34,620 nt of DNA from Macrostomum lignano (lineage: Eukaryota), in NCBI GenBank assembly GCA_002269645.1, contig NIVC01000370.1:1-34620 (forward strand), in the 5' to 3' direction. A program made the translations under genes and the position numbers. Shown one piece after another: positions 3,105 through 33,444 of this stretch. Position 1 is the stretch's first letter, and the number at the start of each line of letters is the position of its first letter. Below the pieces are notes generated by a model. The model did no database searches. It saw only the letters and a program-made list of their open reading frames with translations, and was not told where the DNA came from.

Positions 3105-3691
3105 ATGAAGGCCACTCTGATTTTCCTTGCCGCAATGGCTGCAGTGTTGATCTGCTGCACTGGTGAGTTCACTTTGCTTTGCTCTAAAGAGAAATTCAGA
3201 TACGCTGTTCAGCCTGTGCGTGTGTACCCATACCCAACATTCTTTCCCAACATCCCACAGACGCTTGCAGGCGCGAAGGCGACCGATGCGACAACGACCG
3301 TCCGTGGCGACGCTGCTGCAGTGGCGACTGTCGACGAGGCAGGTGCGTGAGCTCGTGTCAGGAGCACCGCCAGAGCTGCAGACGGGACAAAGACTGCTGC
3401 TCCGGAGTCTGCGAGTGGTCGTTCAGGTCACGTGAGCGAGTCTGCAAGCGCAACCGTTCCTGCAAGGAGCACCGCCAGCGCTGCAGACGGGACAAAGACT
3501 GCTGCTCCGGAGTCTGCGAGTGGTCGTTCAGGACACGTGAGCGAGTCTGCAAGCGCAAGCGCAACCGTTCCTGCAAGGAGCACCGCCAGCGCTGCAGACG
3601 GGACAAAGACTGCTGCTCCGGAGTCTGCGAGTGGTCGTTCAGGACACGTGAGCGAGTCTGCAAGCGCGACTGGCGGGGCCGCTCGAACTGA
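3105..3691 (+). CDS. Secreted four-domain cystine-knot (ICK/knottin-like) precursor, copy 2; exons 3105-3162 and 3261-3691; 162 aa
   Basis: ATG 3105 gives MKATLIFLAAMAAVLICCT. Phase-1 intron 3163-3260 (GTGAGT...CCCACAG). Four six-Cys domains with basic linkers. Spliced length 489 nt, in frame. Confidence 0.9.
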
Positions 3692-5390: not shown

Positions 5391-7090
5391 ATGCCGAGAA
5401 AATGCAGCGTCATTTTCTGTTGTGCAAACTACAATAGTAACCGTGATCGGAATGTTGCAGTATTTTCATTTCCTAAAGATGCAACTGAACGAGAGGCTTG
5501 GCGACTGTCTCTGCCTAATCAACTGACGGTAAGACTTTCTTCAAATGTGCTTTGTGAATCAGATTTACCCTGGCCACATGAATTCATTAACAATTCTGTT
5601 GTTGTTTAGACCGTGACAGACTACATGGGCGTGTGTGCTAAGCACTGGCCTCAAGATGCACCAATGATAAAAAAGGAAGAATGGTATATGTTCCCCATTT
5701 ATTTTGTTGTCTAGCGGGCAAAAGCAAGAGGTGTCTCGTTTATTGACCGAGGCGAAGCGTGCGAAGCCTCGGTCAATGATCGAGACACCTCTTGCTTTTG
5801 GCCCTAGACAGCTGAATGAGTGGGGAATATGATATGTATCCCCCGTTCGTTGTCTATGGTTGTTGTCTCGAATTTATCAGCCCGCGGGGCAGCGGGAAAT
5901 AAATGATTTATTCACCTAGGGAAATAAATGAAAACATGCGTCACATAGACACTCGCCCGGGGCAAAAGCTACATCCACCATCAGTTTTCGACGGAGTCCC
6001 GCAGTCCTGCCTCGTTCAAACACAAGGTTTGTGAAGTTCTACTGCTCAAATATTTGCACTCCATCAAATAGGGTCGAAACGAAACACTAAGGTGCGTGCT
6101 TGGATATTGCAGTGCATGCCAGTCGACATGCTGAGGGAAGGGGCGTGCTGCTGTCCGAACGATGCCTTTTCCAAGATGAACTAGTAGAATTTCGAGAGCG
6201 TGACACGCTGCCATCGTGGACTGAATTCCGAGCATCCATTCACTGTTCAAACGTCATCAAAGCACATCAGCTTATTGTTACCATTGTTCAAGAGGAGGTA
6301 AAATATTCAGAAAATATTCGGCATCTTCTCGTTAAGCGCCAATGCCGAAATGGTTCTGCGAGTTTTCGTTTCACCAAACTATTCCGTGCGATGCTTTCGG
6401 TTACACTCACCAGTTGCGGTTCGAGATCTGCTTGGATTTCAACCAACATTAAAGTATTGGTCGCAACTTGAAGCTATCATAAATCGTTGTAAAAACTCTA
6501 CAGTGGACGTCGAAAGTGAGGTGAGGGCATTATCTAAGAACCTTTCTATTGCCTTTAACCACGATGGAGTTGTACCGGACACATCGGTTACATTCATCCT
6601 GAAGCTACTCGAGTTCGCCACAACGCACCCAAACAATCGACGATACGACATTGCCACTATGCGCCAATCTGCTTTGCTTTACCTGATTAGCAGTTCTGCA
6701 TACGCGCATGCACAGACGCTCCTTCCTTTGCCCCACCAACGCACATTACGCACTCAGTTGGCTGGTCTAGGAGAGATTGGCACTGAAAATGATGCACACG
6801 AGATCGTAAAGGTCGCATTTGCCAAACTGAAACCGCAGCAGAAGTCTTGTGTGTTGATTTTCGATGAAATGTATGTCCAGCCATCGATTCGCTATCGGTG
6901 CCAACATCTGCTCGGCCAAGCGTCAGACAATCATAACAAAACTGCTCGAACAGTGCTCGCAATAATGTTGAAGCCATTGTTCGGCGGTAAGCCATTTGTT
7001 CTAAGGCTGATACCGATTTTTCTTCTTTCCGCCGACTTTTTGTACCATCAGCTTCGAAAGTGCATTCAACTCGTCAATCAACATGGAGGC
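5391..7090 (+). pseudogene. Truncated, interrupted THAP-domain P-element transposase
   Basis: MPRKCSVIFC...FSFPKD...AW, intron 5529-5609 (GTAAGA...TTTAG), then VCAKHW completes the THAP C2CH motif; PPSVF follows at ~5985. ORF 6350-7126 has LPLPHQRTLR, CVLIFDEMYV (first catalytic Asp), TARTVLAIML and GGKPF, and homology appears to end near HGG, before the remaining catalytic residues. Confidence 0.85.
5687..5965. mobile_element. Foldback/hairpin insertion interrupting the THAP coding region
   Basis: Arms 5708-5753 and 5766-5810 are ~90% reverse-complementary around loop GAAGCGTGCGAA, with outer TTCCCCA/TGGGGAA. It separates KHWPQD from PPSVF. Exact ends uncertain. Confidence 0.65.
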
Positions 7091-7354
7091 CTATTTATCA
7101 TGGTCAGCTCTTGTCCCGTTCTGTGACTGTTACTTTCCTCTCTGTTAGTTCAGATGAAGAAAGAATCGTAAATTTTTCTCGAGTTTCCTTATATATGTGC
7201 TGCATGTACAGCTTTCCCATTGTGCAGCTTCACGACGGTTACTTTATGTAATAAAACTATTCAACATTTAAGAAACCGACCCTGCACCCGCCTTCTGACT
7301 GCCTATCAAAAAGCCAAATATGATACGAGTATACATTGGCAACTGAAAACATGC

Positions 7355-8694: not shown

Positions 8695-9256
8695 CACAAA
8701 AAGTGAGAATGAAAAGAAAAGTGCACCATCACTAATTTTTGTGTTGCTAAAATTAGTTAACTTTTAAATTACTTTGGACAAAACGTGCGCACCTACTCGC
8801 TGCATTTGCAATTCTGTAGTTTAGAATTGGGAGAATTTGTTCGTTCAGAGTTAAAAACTAAACTGCTTCCATCTCGCCAATACTTTTGTGTACTTTTTGC
8901 ACTACCAACCGTTCAATTTAACTTGTATAGGAAGGTTTTGATCCCCCTGGCGCAACTTCTTCAGCGACATCGTCCCACAAGCTGCGGTGATTCTGCATAT
9001 TCCGCTGAGCGCACCCAAGTGCGCGGATACAGTTCTTTTTGTACAAGCCCCAAATGAATATGGTCACGTATCAGGAATCGAATCAGGGGTTGTGGCGCGT
9101 GACTCAGAGACGCGTTTACCGCTCAGCTGCTCCCTCCTAACTTATTCAACTGGTTTTTTAACTAGCTACTCGTCAGAAAAATTAAACAGAGACAAAATAG
9201 GCACCGAAACCAATTTTTAGTGGTCAGAGTTCTCATTCGTCCAACAGCCACGGACT

Positions 9257-11483
9257 TCATCTGTCTGAAATGTTTGTTTACAATTTTTCCAAGTTTCGAT
9301 GATCCATTATGTAAAGAATTCACGAGAAGTCTTCGACACCATGCAAATGTTTACTTACCAAAGTAAATGATGAGCCTGTCTGCAAAATGTATGTCCTTTG
9401 CGTAAGGCACATCTTTCTGAGTAGAGTAGAACATAACTGGCGGACCGGTCTTGACTCCGTCTCGAACCCACTTGCACCCATCTGCAGCGGAGTTGCCGAT
9501 TCCTATGAAGCCTCTGTCGACACCGCAGCCTCCGTGCGTGAACTGGATGTAGAAGTTGCGGCTGGCTCCGTTGCTAAATTTGCTACCCTCGATGGAGAAT
9601 TTCACGAATGAGCCCTTGCCGATCCAATATGGGTAGGACTTGAGCAGTCTGTCCTTTGTGAACCAATTCTCCGAGTTCAGCTTATCGGTGTCCTTGCTCA
9701 CGTCGAAAGTGGCGCTGGCAACCGCCTTGCCGTTGTTGCGCATCTCGGCCACAATCTTGGTGAACCGGTACTTTTTTATGGCTGCGGGCAGATTATCCAG
9801 CAGGCTGGCTCGGAACAGCGTGGGGAAGTCCTTCGTGTGCGTGTCGCCTTTTTTAGTGTTCCTATATTCTACTAGGGCGTCTTTTCCAGAGTGTGCGGTA
9901 ATAGTGAAGAGCAGGACCTTTCCAGAGCCTGCAATAAGCGTTGCGGATCTTTGCAGACTTTGAATTCACAGTAATGGTATTTGATCGCGATCAGAGTTAG
10001 CACTGCACGATTCACCTAGCGCTATAGAATATTTTTTGCATGCTGGCCGAATCATTTTTTGAAGAGAATGTCTAGACGGGGTGAGTAGCGGGGTGTTAAC
10101 CTCTCTGACACTGGTGCCAAAGTACCCTGGTCCATGCCCAGTCACATTTTTCATGGGTTTGTGAACGGAAAGAGACCTGCGAAAGTGTCTGGATTCACAC
10201 CTATGAGAGCCGACCTCAAAGGTACGGAGTGTTGCATTCCTAATTAGGGGAACTCGGGGTCGCTGTACTCCGTTAGTGAGCGTGTGCCTGCCTACACATC
10301 CGGTGTGCGTGCTCTTGGGTCAGAGGAATGGGCCTGACTGCTGGACTCCTCACTGACGTGGGTCGACTGTGGTCAATTTTCGTGGCTGCACCGAAAAACT
10401 ACCAACTGACTGTAAATTTTTTCTGAGCCAGCTTATAGAATGAAGTAAACACTTGGACTATCTGCAACTCACCGAGCCTGTAGGTTTCGATTCTGCCTTC
10501 TAAAATATAAAATCAGTATGCATTACATTTGATTGCTATGCAACTAACCTATGCACAGTGAAGATTAGAATAAAGAGTTGCATGCATTCTTACTGAGATA
10601 GATGACAAACTTGTCTGCAAAATGTATGTCCCTTGCATAAGGTACATCTTTCTGAGTAGAGTAGAACATGACTGGCGGACCGGTCTTGACGCCGTCTCGA
10701 ACCCACTTGCACCCATCTGCAGCGGAGTTGCCGATTCCCATGAAGCCTTTGTCTACATCGCAGCCTCCGTGCGTGAACTGGATGTAGAAGTTGCGGCTGG
10801 CTGCGGTAAATTTGTTGCCCTTGATGGAGAACGTCACGAATGAGCCCTTGCCGATCCAATACGGGTAGGACTTGACCAGTCTGTCCTTTGTGAACCAGTT
10901 CTCCAAGTTCAGCTTATCAGTGTCCTTGCTCACGTCGAAGGTGGCGCTGGCAACCGCCTTGCCGTTTTTGCGCATCTCGGCCACGATCTCCTGGGCGTTT
11001 GCCAGCCTTACAGCATCTGGCAGGTTGTTGAGCAGAGTGGATCGGAATAATTTCCCATTTTGATCCTTTGTGTCGATGTGACCAGCTTTCCGGAATTCAA
11101 CAAGAGCGTCTTTGCCGAAGTGAGCGCTGATAGAGAACAGAAGTACTTTCCCATGTTCTGCAAGTATAAAATTTTGGTTTCTATAAGGTCGTAGTAAAGA
11201 ATTTGATCAGAGACAGTATGACCAAGACTTAAGTTTTTCAGAAAAGAGCTGCTGTGTGCAAAGTCTCTCTTCACCTGGTTCGTTTGGGAATCCGGCATCT
11301 ACAAAGCGAAAAGGTTTCATTTTATTTGGTCTGACTTTGATAAAATTTGAATCTAGCACTTGTTATATAGAACAGTATAGCACAGTTATATAGTATAGTT
11401 CAAATTCTATCTGTACCAGCAGAGATCAGCAAAGCAGTGAAGGCCAGCAAAGCAGTCAATGCTGCTCCAGCTTGATTCGACAT
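9257..11483 (-). CDS. Secreted protein with two tandem ~190-aa uncharacterised modules; exons 11417-11483, 11275-11298, 10594-11157, 10473-10499, 9359-9928, 9257-9264; ~419 aa
   Basis: Signal peptide MSNQAGAALTALLAFTALLISA. All five introns are GT-AG and phase 1. Internal exons of 24, 564, 27 and 570 nt are all multiples of 3. The modules share KVLLF, LFR-x-x-LL-x-NLP, ENWFTKDRL, YPYWIGKGSF and RNFYIQFTHGGC. The last micro-exon is uncertain (alternative stop at 9351). Confidence 0.75.
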
Positions 11484-12498
11484 ATCGAGTGAGAGTCAAA
11501 CAGTTTGCTGAAGGAAACTTTTTGGGTCTTGAAGAAGTGAAACACTTTGGTCCTTGGAAAGCAAGACTATATGGTCTTGAGTCGTTTCATACAGATAGCA
11601 CCTGCCATTGTGTGTAGCTGGTGAGTCTAAGGCTTATCGTGTGCTATTCAACAGCCAATCGAAGTGGAATTGAACAGCGAACCCCCATTCCATGGACTTA
11701 GACTTTTAGTTTTGATCCAGGAGTTCATGACTTGCCTATTCAAAAATATCGCCGAGCAGCAACAGCATTAGGAGGCAGCAGGAGAATGTTAGGGTTGCTT
11801 CCACTTCCAAAGTGCCTTCCTGGCCCAGTCAACCCTTAAATCGACTCAGCATTTTTTCTACGAGAGAGTAATAAAACTGTGTGCGATATGAGGGGCTCGG
11901 ACCTGTCTAAAGCTCCTAATCATTTCATGGCGTCTAGTTTAAGTTATGACAAATCAATAGTAGATAGAAAAAATGTAGAAAGCACTTGAGTTTAGTAGGG
12001 GTGAATATATACATGTGTAAGAACAAGCGAAAACGAGAAATTGGCTTAAGGCGTAGACCGACTCTTGGCTGCCCAGGGCGCCAAGGCATTCACTTATATA
12101 TTATCATTGTACAGCGAGCAAATGTACATAAGAGCTAGTGAACGTGCGCACACGCAATCAACTAAGCAAACCATCTTGATCTTACACATGTATTTCGAGT
12201 TCATGCGAAAATTAAAGCACTATCACAAATGGTTAGAGCCTCTGCACAAGCCCAGCTAACAGTATAGTTGCACTGAATTGGTCAGAGAAGAGCACAAGCT
12301 ATCGTTACTGTCACATTGTTTCTGACTTTAAGACTCTACTGGAGAAGGTTACAATGACAGACCAATTGCTTGAAACTTTAAGTTACAAACGATGCCGGCT
12401 GCACGGAATTATCATCAGGGAGCCTGCTATCCGACGAGTATTCAGTTGACGAAAAAAGTCGCTGTCGGATTGAAGTGCGATAATAAGTGCCCCGAAAG

Positions 12499-14004: not shown

Positions 14005-14802
14005 CTCCATCCACATCTCCATCCTCATCTCCATCCACATCTCCATCCACATCTCCATCCTCACCTCAATCCTCATCTCCATCCTCATCTCCATCCTCAC
14101 CTCAATCCTCATCTCCATCCTCATCTCCATCCTCATCTCCATCCTCATCTCCATCCTCATCTCCATCCTCATCTCCATCCTCACCTCCATCCTCATCTCC
14201 ATCCTCACCTCAATCCTCATCTCCATCCTCATCTCCATCCTCACCTCAATCCTCATCTCCATCCTCATCTCCATCCTCATCTCCATCCTCATCTCCATCC
14301 TCACCTCAATCCTCATCTCCATCCTCATCTCCATCCTCATCTCAATCCTCATCTCCATCCTCACCTCAATCCTCATCTCCATCCTCATCTCCATCCTCAT
14401 CTCCATCCTCATCTCCATCCTCACCTCAATCCTCATCTCCATCCTCATCTCCATCCTCACCTCAATCCTCATCTCCATCCTCATCTCCATCCTCATCTCC
14501 ATCCTCATCTCCATCCTCACCTCAATCCTCATCTCCATCCTCATCTCCATCCTCACCTCAATCCTCATCTCCATCCTCATCTCCATCCTCATCTCCATCC
14601 TCACCTCAATCCTCATCTCCATCCTCACTCCATCCTCACCTCAATCCTCATCTCCATCCTCATCTCCATCCTCACCTCAATCCTCATCTCCATCCTCATC
14701 TCCATCCTCATCTCCATCCTCATCTCCATCCTCACCTCAATCCTCATCTCCACCCTCATCTCCATCCTCATCTCCACCCTCATCTCCATCCTCATCTCCA
14801 TC
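14005..14802 (+). repeat. 12-bp (6-bp based) microsatellite CATCTCCATCCT / CACCTCAATCCT, ~66 units
   Basis: Direct reading. It generates the artefactual HPHL, ISIL and MRME ORFs. Confidence 0.95.

Positions 14803-15518: not shown

Positions 15519-33444
<17,926 letters not shown>

Follow-up and report, generated by a model that had tools for sequence, protein, structure and literature searches.

A probable two-module secreted protein gene of Macrostomum lignano, built from phase-1 exons and microexons, and the Pfam-unnamed domain family of its modules

Do two partial open reading frames (ORFs) on the minus strand of a minisatellite-rich piece of flatworm DNA belong to two genes, or to a single gene concealed by its own splicing? 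The stretch analysed here (hereafter the window) comprises 34,620 nucleotides of animal genomic DNA from Macrostomum lignano (GenBank assembly GCA_002269645.1, contig NIVC01000370.1, positions 1 to 34,620), and the locus in question runs on its minus strand from 11483 down to about 9351. A preliminary description had proposed that a signal-peptide exon, two microexons, two copies of an unnamed module and a short terminal exon are joined there into one gene. Our analysis of the sequence indicates that a single gene for a secreted two-module protein very probably occupies the locus, and that the modules belong, virtually beyond doubt, to a widespread extracellular family without a name in Pfam.

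Exon structure of the locus

The reverse complement of 9200–11560 was read and the exons were joined by script. All six minus-strand exons were recovered where they had been proposed (Table 1), every junction is GT..AG and in phase 1, and the spliced coding sequence of 1260 nt encodes an intact protein of 419 amino acids (aa) with zero internal stops. In order, the product consists of a signal-like peptide (MSNQAGAALTALLAFTALLISA), DAGFPNEP, module A (188 aa), KGRIETYRL, module B (190 aa) and a final DR; a search of the window with the module found these two copies only. Of 13 candidate ATG-initiated phase-1 exons within 2.5 kb upstream, exon 1 is both the nearest and the most hydrophobic (Kyte-Doolittle maximum over 12 residues 2.52), a hydrophobicity that suggests an extracellular product; the signal peptides of paralogues and the extracellular partner domains of distant relatives agree. 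Two points weigh against the model: the exon-1 donor, GTACAG, is weak, and the whole was built from genomic sequence and comparison with relatives rather than from transcripts.

For the microexons, in-frame fit alone is little proof, because chance candidates are numerous: when every AG...GT segment of 9–63 nt open in phase 1-1 was collected, the first intron held 6 and the second 36. Ranked by polypyrimidine tract and donor consensus, the proposed microexons come first in each set (1/6 and 1/36). Three independent comparisons support them further, the first of which is a motif of the paralogues. F(R/K/H)FEG(N/D)K precedes each module in all Macrostomum-type paralogues; microexon 2 yields Y-R-L-GSG-K, matching the paralogue F-R-F-EGN-K, while microexon 1 yields GF-PNEPEHG-K and resembles the DGFAFEDGK found directly after the signal peptide of relative P0075. 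A tandem acceptor (tag/aag) at 10496 permits a 24-nt variant of microexon 2.

The second comparison is with the NCBI gene model of paralogue P0099 (BOX15_Mlig034437g1), which we mapped exactly onto its contig. It has three exons and two introns, both in phase 1, each of which interrupts the codon that lies three residues ahead of the K of K.LL(F/Y)T. Both module acceptors of the window gene are identical to these introns in position and phase (for module A, before the K of KVLLF); likewise, the microexon 1 donor matches the exon-1 donor of P0099, and the microexon 2 donor equals its inter-module intron. In P0099 the linker, ending ...AISEAFEF at the junction, is the 3' end of a module exon, whereas at our locus an extra 94-nt intron detaches the linker, ending ...ETYRL, as a microexon.

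The third comparison comes from the hemichordate Ptychodera flava (P0023, locus L001). Its modules are each encoded by four exons, yet phase-1 introns flank the unit as a whole, and between the two modules lies a linker microexon of 21 nt, in phase 1 at both ends (L001 7899–7919). Symmetric 1-1 exons typify shuffled extracellular modules (Patthy's rule). Flanking phase-1 introns are present at the locus, in P0099 and around the Ptychodera unit, so that the phase-1 cassettes noted earlier extend beyond this gene, and the module resembles class 1-1 domains such as EGF, Sushi, Kringle and FN3 in these flanks (flatworm and hemichordate) as well as in its co-occurrence with them in mosaic proteins. 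It differs in that the Ptychodera module is split by three internal introns of phases 0, 2 and 1, and the single-exon cassette is therefore a Macrostomum feature.

The public annotation of the locus tells a different story. Its only public protein, P0001 (UniRef A0A1I8IGX2, Macrostomum lignano), was returned by our exhaustive profile search (see below) with 731 bits and, when mapped on the window, proved to be a chimera without the signal exon and without either microexon. Residues 1–182 come from scattered minus-strand ORFs at 20.8, 17.7, 16.3 and 14.8 kb, of which the 16.3-kb piece runs antisense to a cadherin-like ORF and the 14.8-kb piece is a translated MEMRMEMR minisatellite. The model then jumps from the middle of module A (...VKTG) straight into module B: at residue 343 (window 10679) a cryptic phase-1 GT within module A is joined to the module B acceptor. 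Such a splice would remove the last three strands of module A; it is a minor isoform or else an artefact of annotation. P0001 is 97–99% identical to the window and so derives from another haplotype or from a near-identical copy. The correct product is effectively absent from the public protein sets queried.

At the 3' end, the preliminary description holds in part. The 8-nt sequence proposed as a terminal exon exists, but the evidence favours it no more than plain read-through past the module B donor into a TAA. Its acceptor, aaacaaacatttcag, is poor in pyrimidines, and no homology backs the exon among the family members compared. The protein has 419 aa with either C-terminus. Family members, including transcript-derived contigs and P0099, stop one or two residues past the last strand, inside the module exon (YLK, YLV, YLM or YLI before the stop), and P0001 likewise ends IIYFGK. 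Because the relatives end in this way and P0001 agrees, the read-through end FGK appears more parsimonious; use of the 8-nt exon is uncertain and probably unnecessary.

The module family and its fold

An exhaustive HMMER search with a profile of the window modules was needed because a word-indexed homology search found so little (nothing for module A, and three Ptychodera proteins only for the family profile). At E<=1e-3 it retrieved 69 proteins, a number that falls to 22 at E<=1e-10, and many matches span module positions 1–190. Macrostomum paralogues carry one to nine tandem modules, while distant members occur in amphioxus, crinoid, hemichordate, gastropod, nemertean and scleractinian coral, in company with ZP, EGF/cEGF, Sushi, TSP1, F5/8C, C-type lectin, Kringle, PAN and FN3 domains. 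The distant members share the consensus NWF.K.RL..S.W.D...N.FSI.G...RRF.IN..YGGC..D.GWL.V.D...C.WE...P...YS...AD...I, and the motif RRFFIxxxYGGCxxDxGW, to which the preliminary description had likened the module and which it placed in molluscan and cnidarian predicted proteins, is indeed that of these relatives, gastropod and coral included.

In an alignment of 63 modules (A3), F74, W88, C133 and C150 are invariant and F89, F110, G114, R122, D136, G138, P162 and A181 nearly so, within the motifs NWF, FSI.G, R.F.I..(Y)GGC..D.G, C.W and AD..IY. Modules A and B carry every one of these residues. Each has exactly two cysteines, in GGC...GCKW, and the RNFYIQFTHGGC motif, as had been described.

The module is also unnamed in a strict sense. 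Pfam scans of the 419-aa protein, module A, 54 distant relatives and single distant modules gave no family for it, and hence no confident match to any well-known domain; Fibrinogen_C did not match the 419-aa protein or module A even at E<=10; and no chain in the PDB matches the module by sequence or profile. Literature searches (Macrostomum with fibrinogen, novel domains, signature peptides) returned nothing on the family. Mlig-ap1 and Mlig-ap2, adhesive proteins of Macrostomum, bear no relation to the gene (PMC6410801).

Several candidate assignments were rejected. The DUF7922 score in P0016 adds up four fragments that each lie below threshold, with 0 passing stretches, and disappears when one module is scanned by itself; phmmer matches in the PDB to designer PPR proteins are an artefact of a short helical segment, again with 0 passing stretches. 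The automatic UniProt names of the Macrostomum relatives (Jacalin, TSPc, Peptidase_S9, DUF4091, multihaem cytochrome, HZS_alpha, amine oxidase, fibrinogen C-terminal) contradict one another, and none was reproduced by Pfam scans. ApeC and other invertebrate-restricted domains were also considered and dropped, as no Pfam model of any kind matched the module.

A close comparison is with Macrostomum paralogues such as P0099, P0005, P0004 and P0013, which are like the window gene in the module (32–39% identity), the position of the phase-1 intron before it, their signal peptides and a stop one or two residues past the last strand. Most Macrostomum paralogues differ from it by an extra N-terminal domain of about 200 aa or by more modules. 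This second domain is shared by P0005, P0099, P0003/P0074 and P0009 (...GNGYYF.VPL...C..KC...V.F.C.RRS.C.R...L.F...) and has no Pfam match; the window gene lacks it. In a protein from an environmental assembly (P0042, an ENA contig, 545 aa) the module occurs together with DUF4215 Cys-rich repeats and a fibrinogen-type head; given this source, the family may reach beyond animals.

With alignment A3, AlphaFold2 returned a compact alpha/beta domain of about 190 residues at high confidence (predicted local distance difference test, pLDDT, 96; predicted template-modelling score, pTM, 0.91), whereas pLDDT was 31 with just the two window modules as alignment. Does this fold belong to a known superfamily? 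The check by AlphaFold and Foldseek suggested earlier gave a confident structure but no significant match to it: about 44 of the top 50 weak matches in the PDB are fibrinogen-related domains (FReDs), namely ficolins, fibrinogen beta and gamma, ANGPTL3 and the tenascin-R FG domain. The description of the module as unnamed is thereby qualified, in that no Pfam family matches but a distant named relative, the FReD, is plausible though statistically not established.

FReDs (PF00147; ficolins, tachylectin-5, snail FREPs, angiopoietins and tenascin FG) resemble the module in being extracellular and about 200 residues long, and some module-family members open with the FReD-type head V(F/Y)CDM.T.GGGWT. 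Coral P0058 reads VYCDMTGGGWTMIFKAVSG, a canonical FReD head. The Fibrinogen_C model matches P0042 with 28.8 bits (cutoff 22), though only over profile positions 5–52 of 221, and this match runs directly into the module as ...VFCDMVTDGGGWTMVFKASSG, which is the first strand of the module itself; the head and the module thus share a structural element. We then aligned the family by hhalign with a control of eight human FReDs, all of which match PF00147 over their full length (235–324 bits); one was confirmed as ficolin-2 against the PDB. The 35 non-flatworm members placed module columns 1–32 on FReD columns 33–63 (E 0.019, probability 2.5%), exactly the register predicted from P0042. A relaxed alignment keeps further landmarks colinear (FSI.G with FST.D, GGC..D.GW with nCa..gaWW, the second Cys and the terminal strand), and the elements follow one another in the same order in both: first strand, short W-helix, helix, beta-hairpin, FS(T/I) strand, Cys...GW...Cys loop and terminal strand. 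The invariant pair C133–C150 (spacing 17 residues) brackets D.GW and is colinear with the disulfide of the FReD P-subdomain.

A number of results weigh against this kinship. Foldseek found zero PDB matches at E<=0.001; the best FReD matches have E 0.07–0.4 and a query template-modelling (TM) score (TMq) of 0.19–0.35, over about 75–85 columns at 4.3–6 A root-mean-square deviation, so that TM to solved FReDs is at most 0.35, short of the value above 0.5 that would mark the same fold. With the whole family, hhalign gives a probability of 0.2%, and the 2.5% of the non-flatworm subset is itself low. The module sequence lacks any equivalent of the FReD Ca2+ motif (D.D.D after FST). The fibrinogen-type head of P0042 and P0058 could be a shuffled neighbour rather than the N-terminus of the domain. 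No single test makes the link significant. As for the window itself, the N-terminal A-subdomain head (C...CDM.T.GGGWT) is absent from both modules, which start at the GGGWT-equivalent strand (KVLLFSI).

These results can equally be read as those of an independent fold unrelated to FReDs, with a shuffled module adjacent to it in the two relatives that carry a head, and with Foldseek matches that are noise from the redundant FReD entries of the PDB. The absent Foldseek significance, the low TM and hhalign values and the empty profile search of PDB sequences are what such a fold would give. It accounts less well for a Fibrinogen_C match that ends at the GGGWT strand, for the independent recovery by hhalign of the register predicted from P0042, and for the agreement of the sole invariant Cys pair with the P-subdomain disulfide. 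We regard the two readings as about equally likely, each falling a little short of probable; descent of the family as a very diverged FReD offshoot is the hypothesis that we would place first, but it is plausible, not established. If it holds, the central-sheet half and the Cys-GW-Cys loop would have been kept and the ligand-binding half remodelled. Intelectins (X-type lectins) offer a precedent for a lectin family that retains a short N-terminal segment of FReD type while its body has diverged beyond sequence recognition; they are likened to the module by description alone, none being among the 50 Foldseek matches listed.

Possible function and history of the modules

The family context is uniformly extracellular, and the domain is conserved, constrained, compact and present in tandem. 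Taken globally, the explanation that we favour, with moderate confidence, is that of one gene for a secreted two-module protein from a family of FReD offshoots, acting as a soluble multivalent binder. Mechanistically, the protein would be secreted co-translationally with cleavage of the signal peptide near ISA/DA, each module would be closed by one disulfide (C133–C150), and a short aromatic linker strand encoded by a microexon would prime each module. The result would be a soluble bivalent or multivalent binder, lectin-like or matrix-binding. The chain shows no oligomerisation region, so its valency is assigned to tandem repetition within the chain itself; ficolins and angiopoietins, by comparison, oligomerise through coiled coils or collagen, and the flatworm proteins lack these regions as well as the head subdomain and carry tandem repeats instead. 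By analogy with ficolins, tachylectin-5 and snail FREPs, a lectin-like function in recognition of glycans or acetyl groups may be proposed, though doubtfully. No lectin-site or ligand-binding residues were identifiable in the module, which counts against such a binder.

About equally likely, and similarly tentative, is a role in the matrix or in a secretory product. The protein would then be a structural component of mucus, eggshell, cement or adhesive gland, or seminal fluid, acting by self-assembly or matrix cross-linking instead of glycan recognition. The large lineage-specific expansion in Macrostomum, with up to 9 tandem modules, would suit this role, as would the ZP/EGF/TSP1 mosaics of matrix type among the distant relatives and the failure to identify a lectin site. 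On the other hand, the sequence is without low-complexity or cross-linking motifs, and its modules are compact globular domains with one disulfide each.

The history of the two modules was examined by counting substitutions between them (Nei-Gojobori). Overall they are 77% identical (E 8e-108), and the identity is very unevenly spread: the last 394 nt agree at 92%, the first ~170 nt can hardly be aligned, and the introns are unrelated. Over the first 57 codons the proportion of synonymous differences is saturated (pS 0.76) and the nonsynonymous rate (dN) is well below it, at 0.45; over the last 132 codons the synonymous rate (dS) is 0.22 and dN 0.054, a dN/dS ratio (omega) of ~0.24. The boundary between these regions is sharp and lies at IVAEMR. 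These figures indicate an old duplication followed by a gene-conversion tract confined to the exon, with purifying selection on both copies.

Could the locus nevertheless give two products? Intron retention after module A would yield a one-module protein ending ...VIYLSKNACNSLF and a stop, with module B expressed alone or not at all. The ORF 10565..10984 does continue past the module A donor for 9 codons before it meets a stop, family members often end soon after their last strand, and chance in-frame microexons are plentiful. This reading appears improbable, since module B has no signal-peptide exon of its own, none being found between the modules, and is under purifying selection; microexon 2 supplies the conserved pre-module motif between consensus splice sites and has a donor that matches P0099; and multi-module paralogues are the rule. 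The proposal of one gene instead of two is thus upheld. Least probable by far is a decaying duplicate whose ORFs are relics: the sole public model is chimeric and a transposase remnant lies 2 kb away, but both modules run unbroken through their 190 codons, no splice site is lost, every family-invariant residue is present, and dN/dS well under 1, with purifying selection on both copies, argues against a pseudogene.

Table 1. Features of the locus and of its surroundings in the window (positions count from the first letter of the window).
Feature	Position	Strand	Details
Exon 1: start codon and signal peptide MSNQAGAALTALLAFTALLISA	11417..11483 (67 nt)	minus	Ends in phase 1; paralogues likewise have N-terminal signal peptides
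Microexon 1: (D)AGFPNEP, pre-module motif of module A	11275..11298 (24 nt, phase 1-1)	minus	Acceptor ttcgctttgtag, donor gtgaag
Module A exon: one complete domain of ~188 aa	10594..11157 (564 nt, phase 1-1)	minus	pLDDT 96, pTM 0.91
Microexon 2: (K)GRIETYRL, inter-module linker	10473..10499 (27 nt, phase 1-1)	minus	Acceptor tttatattttag, donor gtgagt
Module B exon: second complete domain	9359..9928 (570 nt, entered in phase 1)	minus	Splice sites and similarity to module A
Read-through tail (G)GT AAG TAA, giving ...IIYFGK and stop	9351..9358	minus	ORF 9351..9752; stop TAA at 9353-9351
Proposed terminal coding segment ACAGATGA, giving ...IIYFDR and stop	9257..9264 (8 nt)	minus	Via 94-nt intron; acceptor aaacaaacatttcag
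Putative gene-conversion tract, module A side	10599..10989	minus	92% nucleotide identity to 9364-9757
Putative gene-conversion tract, module B side	9364..9757	minus	92% nucleotide identity to module A side
Inverted ORF pair, first copy	1108-1575	minus	Three tandem six-cysteine units of ~35 aa
Inverted ORF pair, second copy	3347-3691	plus	Three tandem six-cysteine units of ~35 aa
ORF of 258 aa, putative transposase remnant	6350-7126	plus	TNP-like RNase H N-terminal domain
Cadherin-repeat exons	32323-32802; 32990-33364	plus	Pfam Cadherin 64.6 and 35.4 bits
Probable further exons of the cadherin gene	15855-16352; 22845-23195; ~28600-28970	plus	
Minisatellite arrays	14005-14802; 17793-18879; 19662-20208; 20899-21394; 22078-22753; 26264-26781; 27097-27582; 28149-28559; 29657-32302		Periods 12-43 nt

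Surroundings of the gene and implications

Elsewhere in the window, an inverted pair of ORFs encodes cysteine-rich units of the pattern C..C..CC..C..C (for example SCKEHRQSCRRDKDCCSGVC.WSFR.RERVCKR), separated by basic KR sites and repeated with periods of 105 and 111 nt, and looks like a multi-knottin precursor. The flatworm family UPF0506 matches the whole proteins with 25–32 bits (cutoff 23.2), although no stretch passes by itself, and there are weak whole-protein matches to spider inhibitor cystine knot (ICK) peptide families (for the plus-strand copy, Toxin_21 at 27.1 against a cutoff of 21). The 258-aa ORF about 2 kb from the gene has a TNP-like RNase H N-terminal domain (27.2 bits, cutoff 24.6) and weakly matches the P-element transposase helix-turn-helix; it is taken to be a remnant of a transposase of THAP9/P-element type.

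Two cadherin-repeat exons with FAT4/CELSR-like sub-hits mark a large plus-strand cadherin gene, to which three further segments probably belong as exons. Its introns are packed with long minisatellites, whose density is exceptional (up to 103 copies and 2.6 kb). Several of them produce long spurious ORFs in multiple frames, and one such ORF, MEMRMEMR..., entered the public model P0001.

The locus shows how phase-1 microexons can conceal a simple secreted protein from ORF-based and automated annotation, and the present model corrects a wrong public one. It also offers a clean, small case of exon-cassette duplication followed by sharply bounded intragenic gene conversion. For the family, the module is an extracellular domain conserved from coral to amphioxus, with a confident predicted structure, no Pfam entry, no solved relative and no literature found, and is thus a candidate new domain family. 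If the FReD link is real, that superfamily, which is central to innate immunity in invertebrates, would gain a remodelled branch. As a tentative extension, on the less likely side, the module may form a so far overlooked branch, present across the Metazoa, of the fibrinogen-like lectin superfamily, or alternatively a new fold. It would have been lost in vertebrates or gone undetected there, with its ligand-binding half rebuilt and its valency achieved by tandem repetition; Macrostomum would then have expanded it, through exon duplication and gene conversion, as a secreted recognition repertoire.

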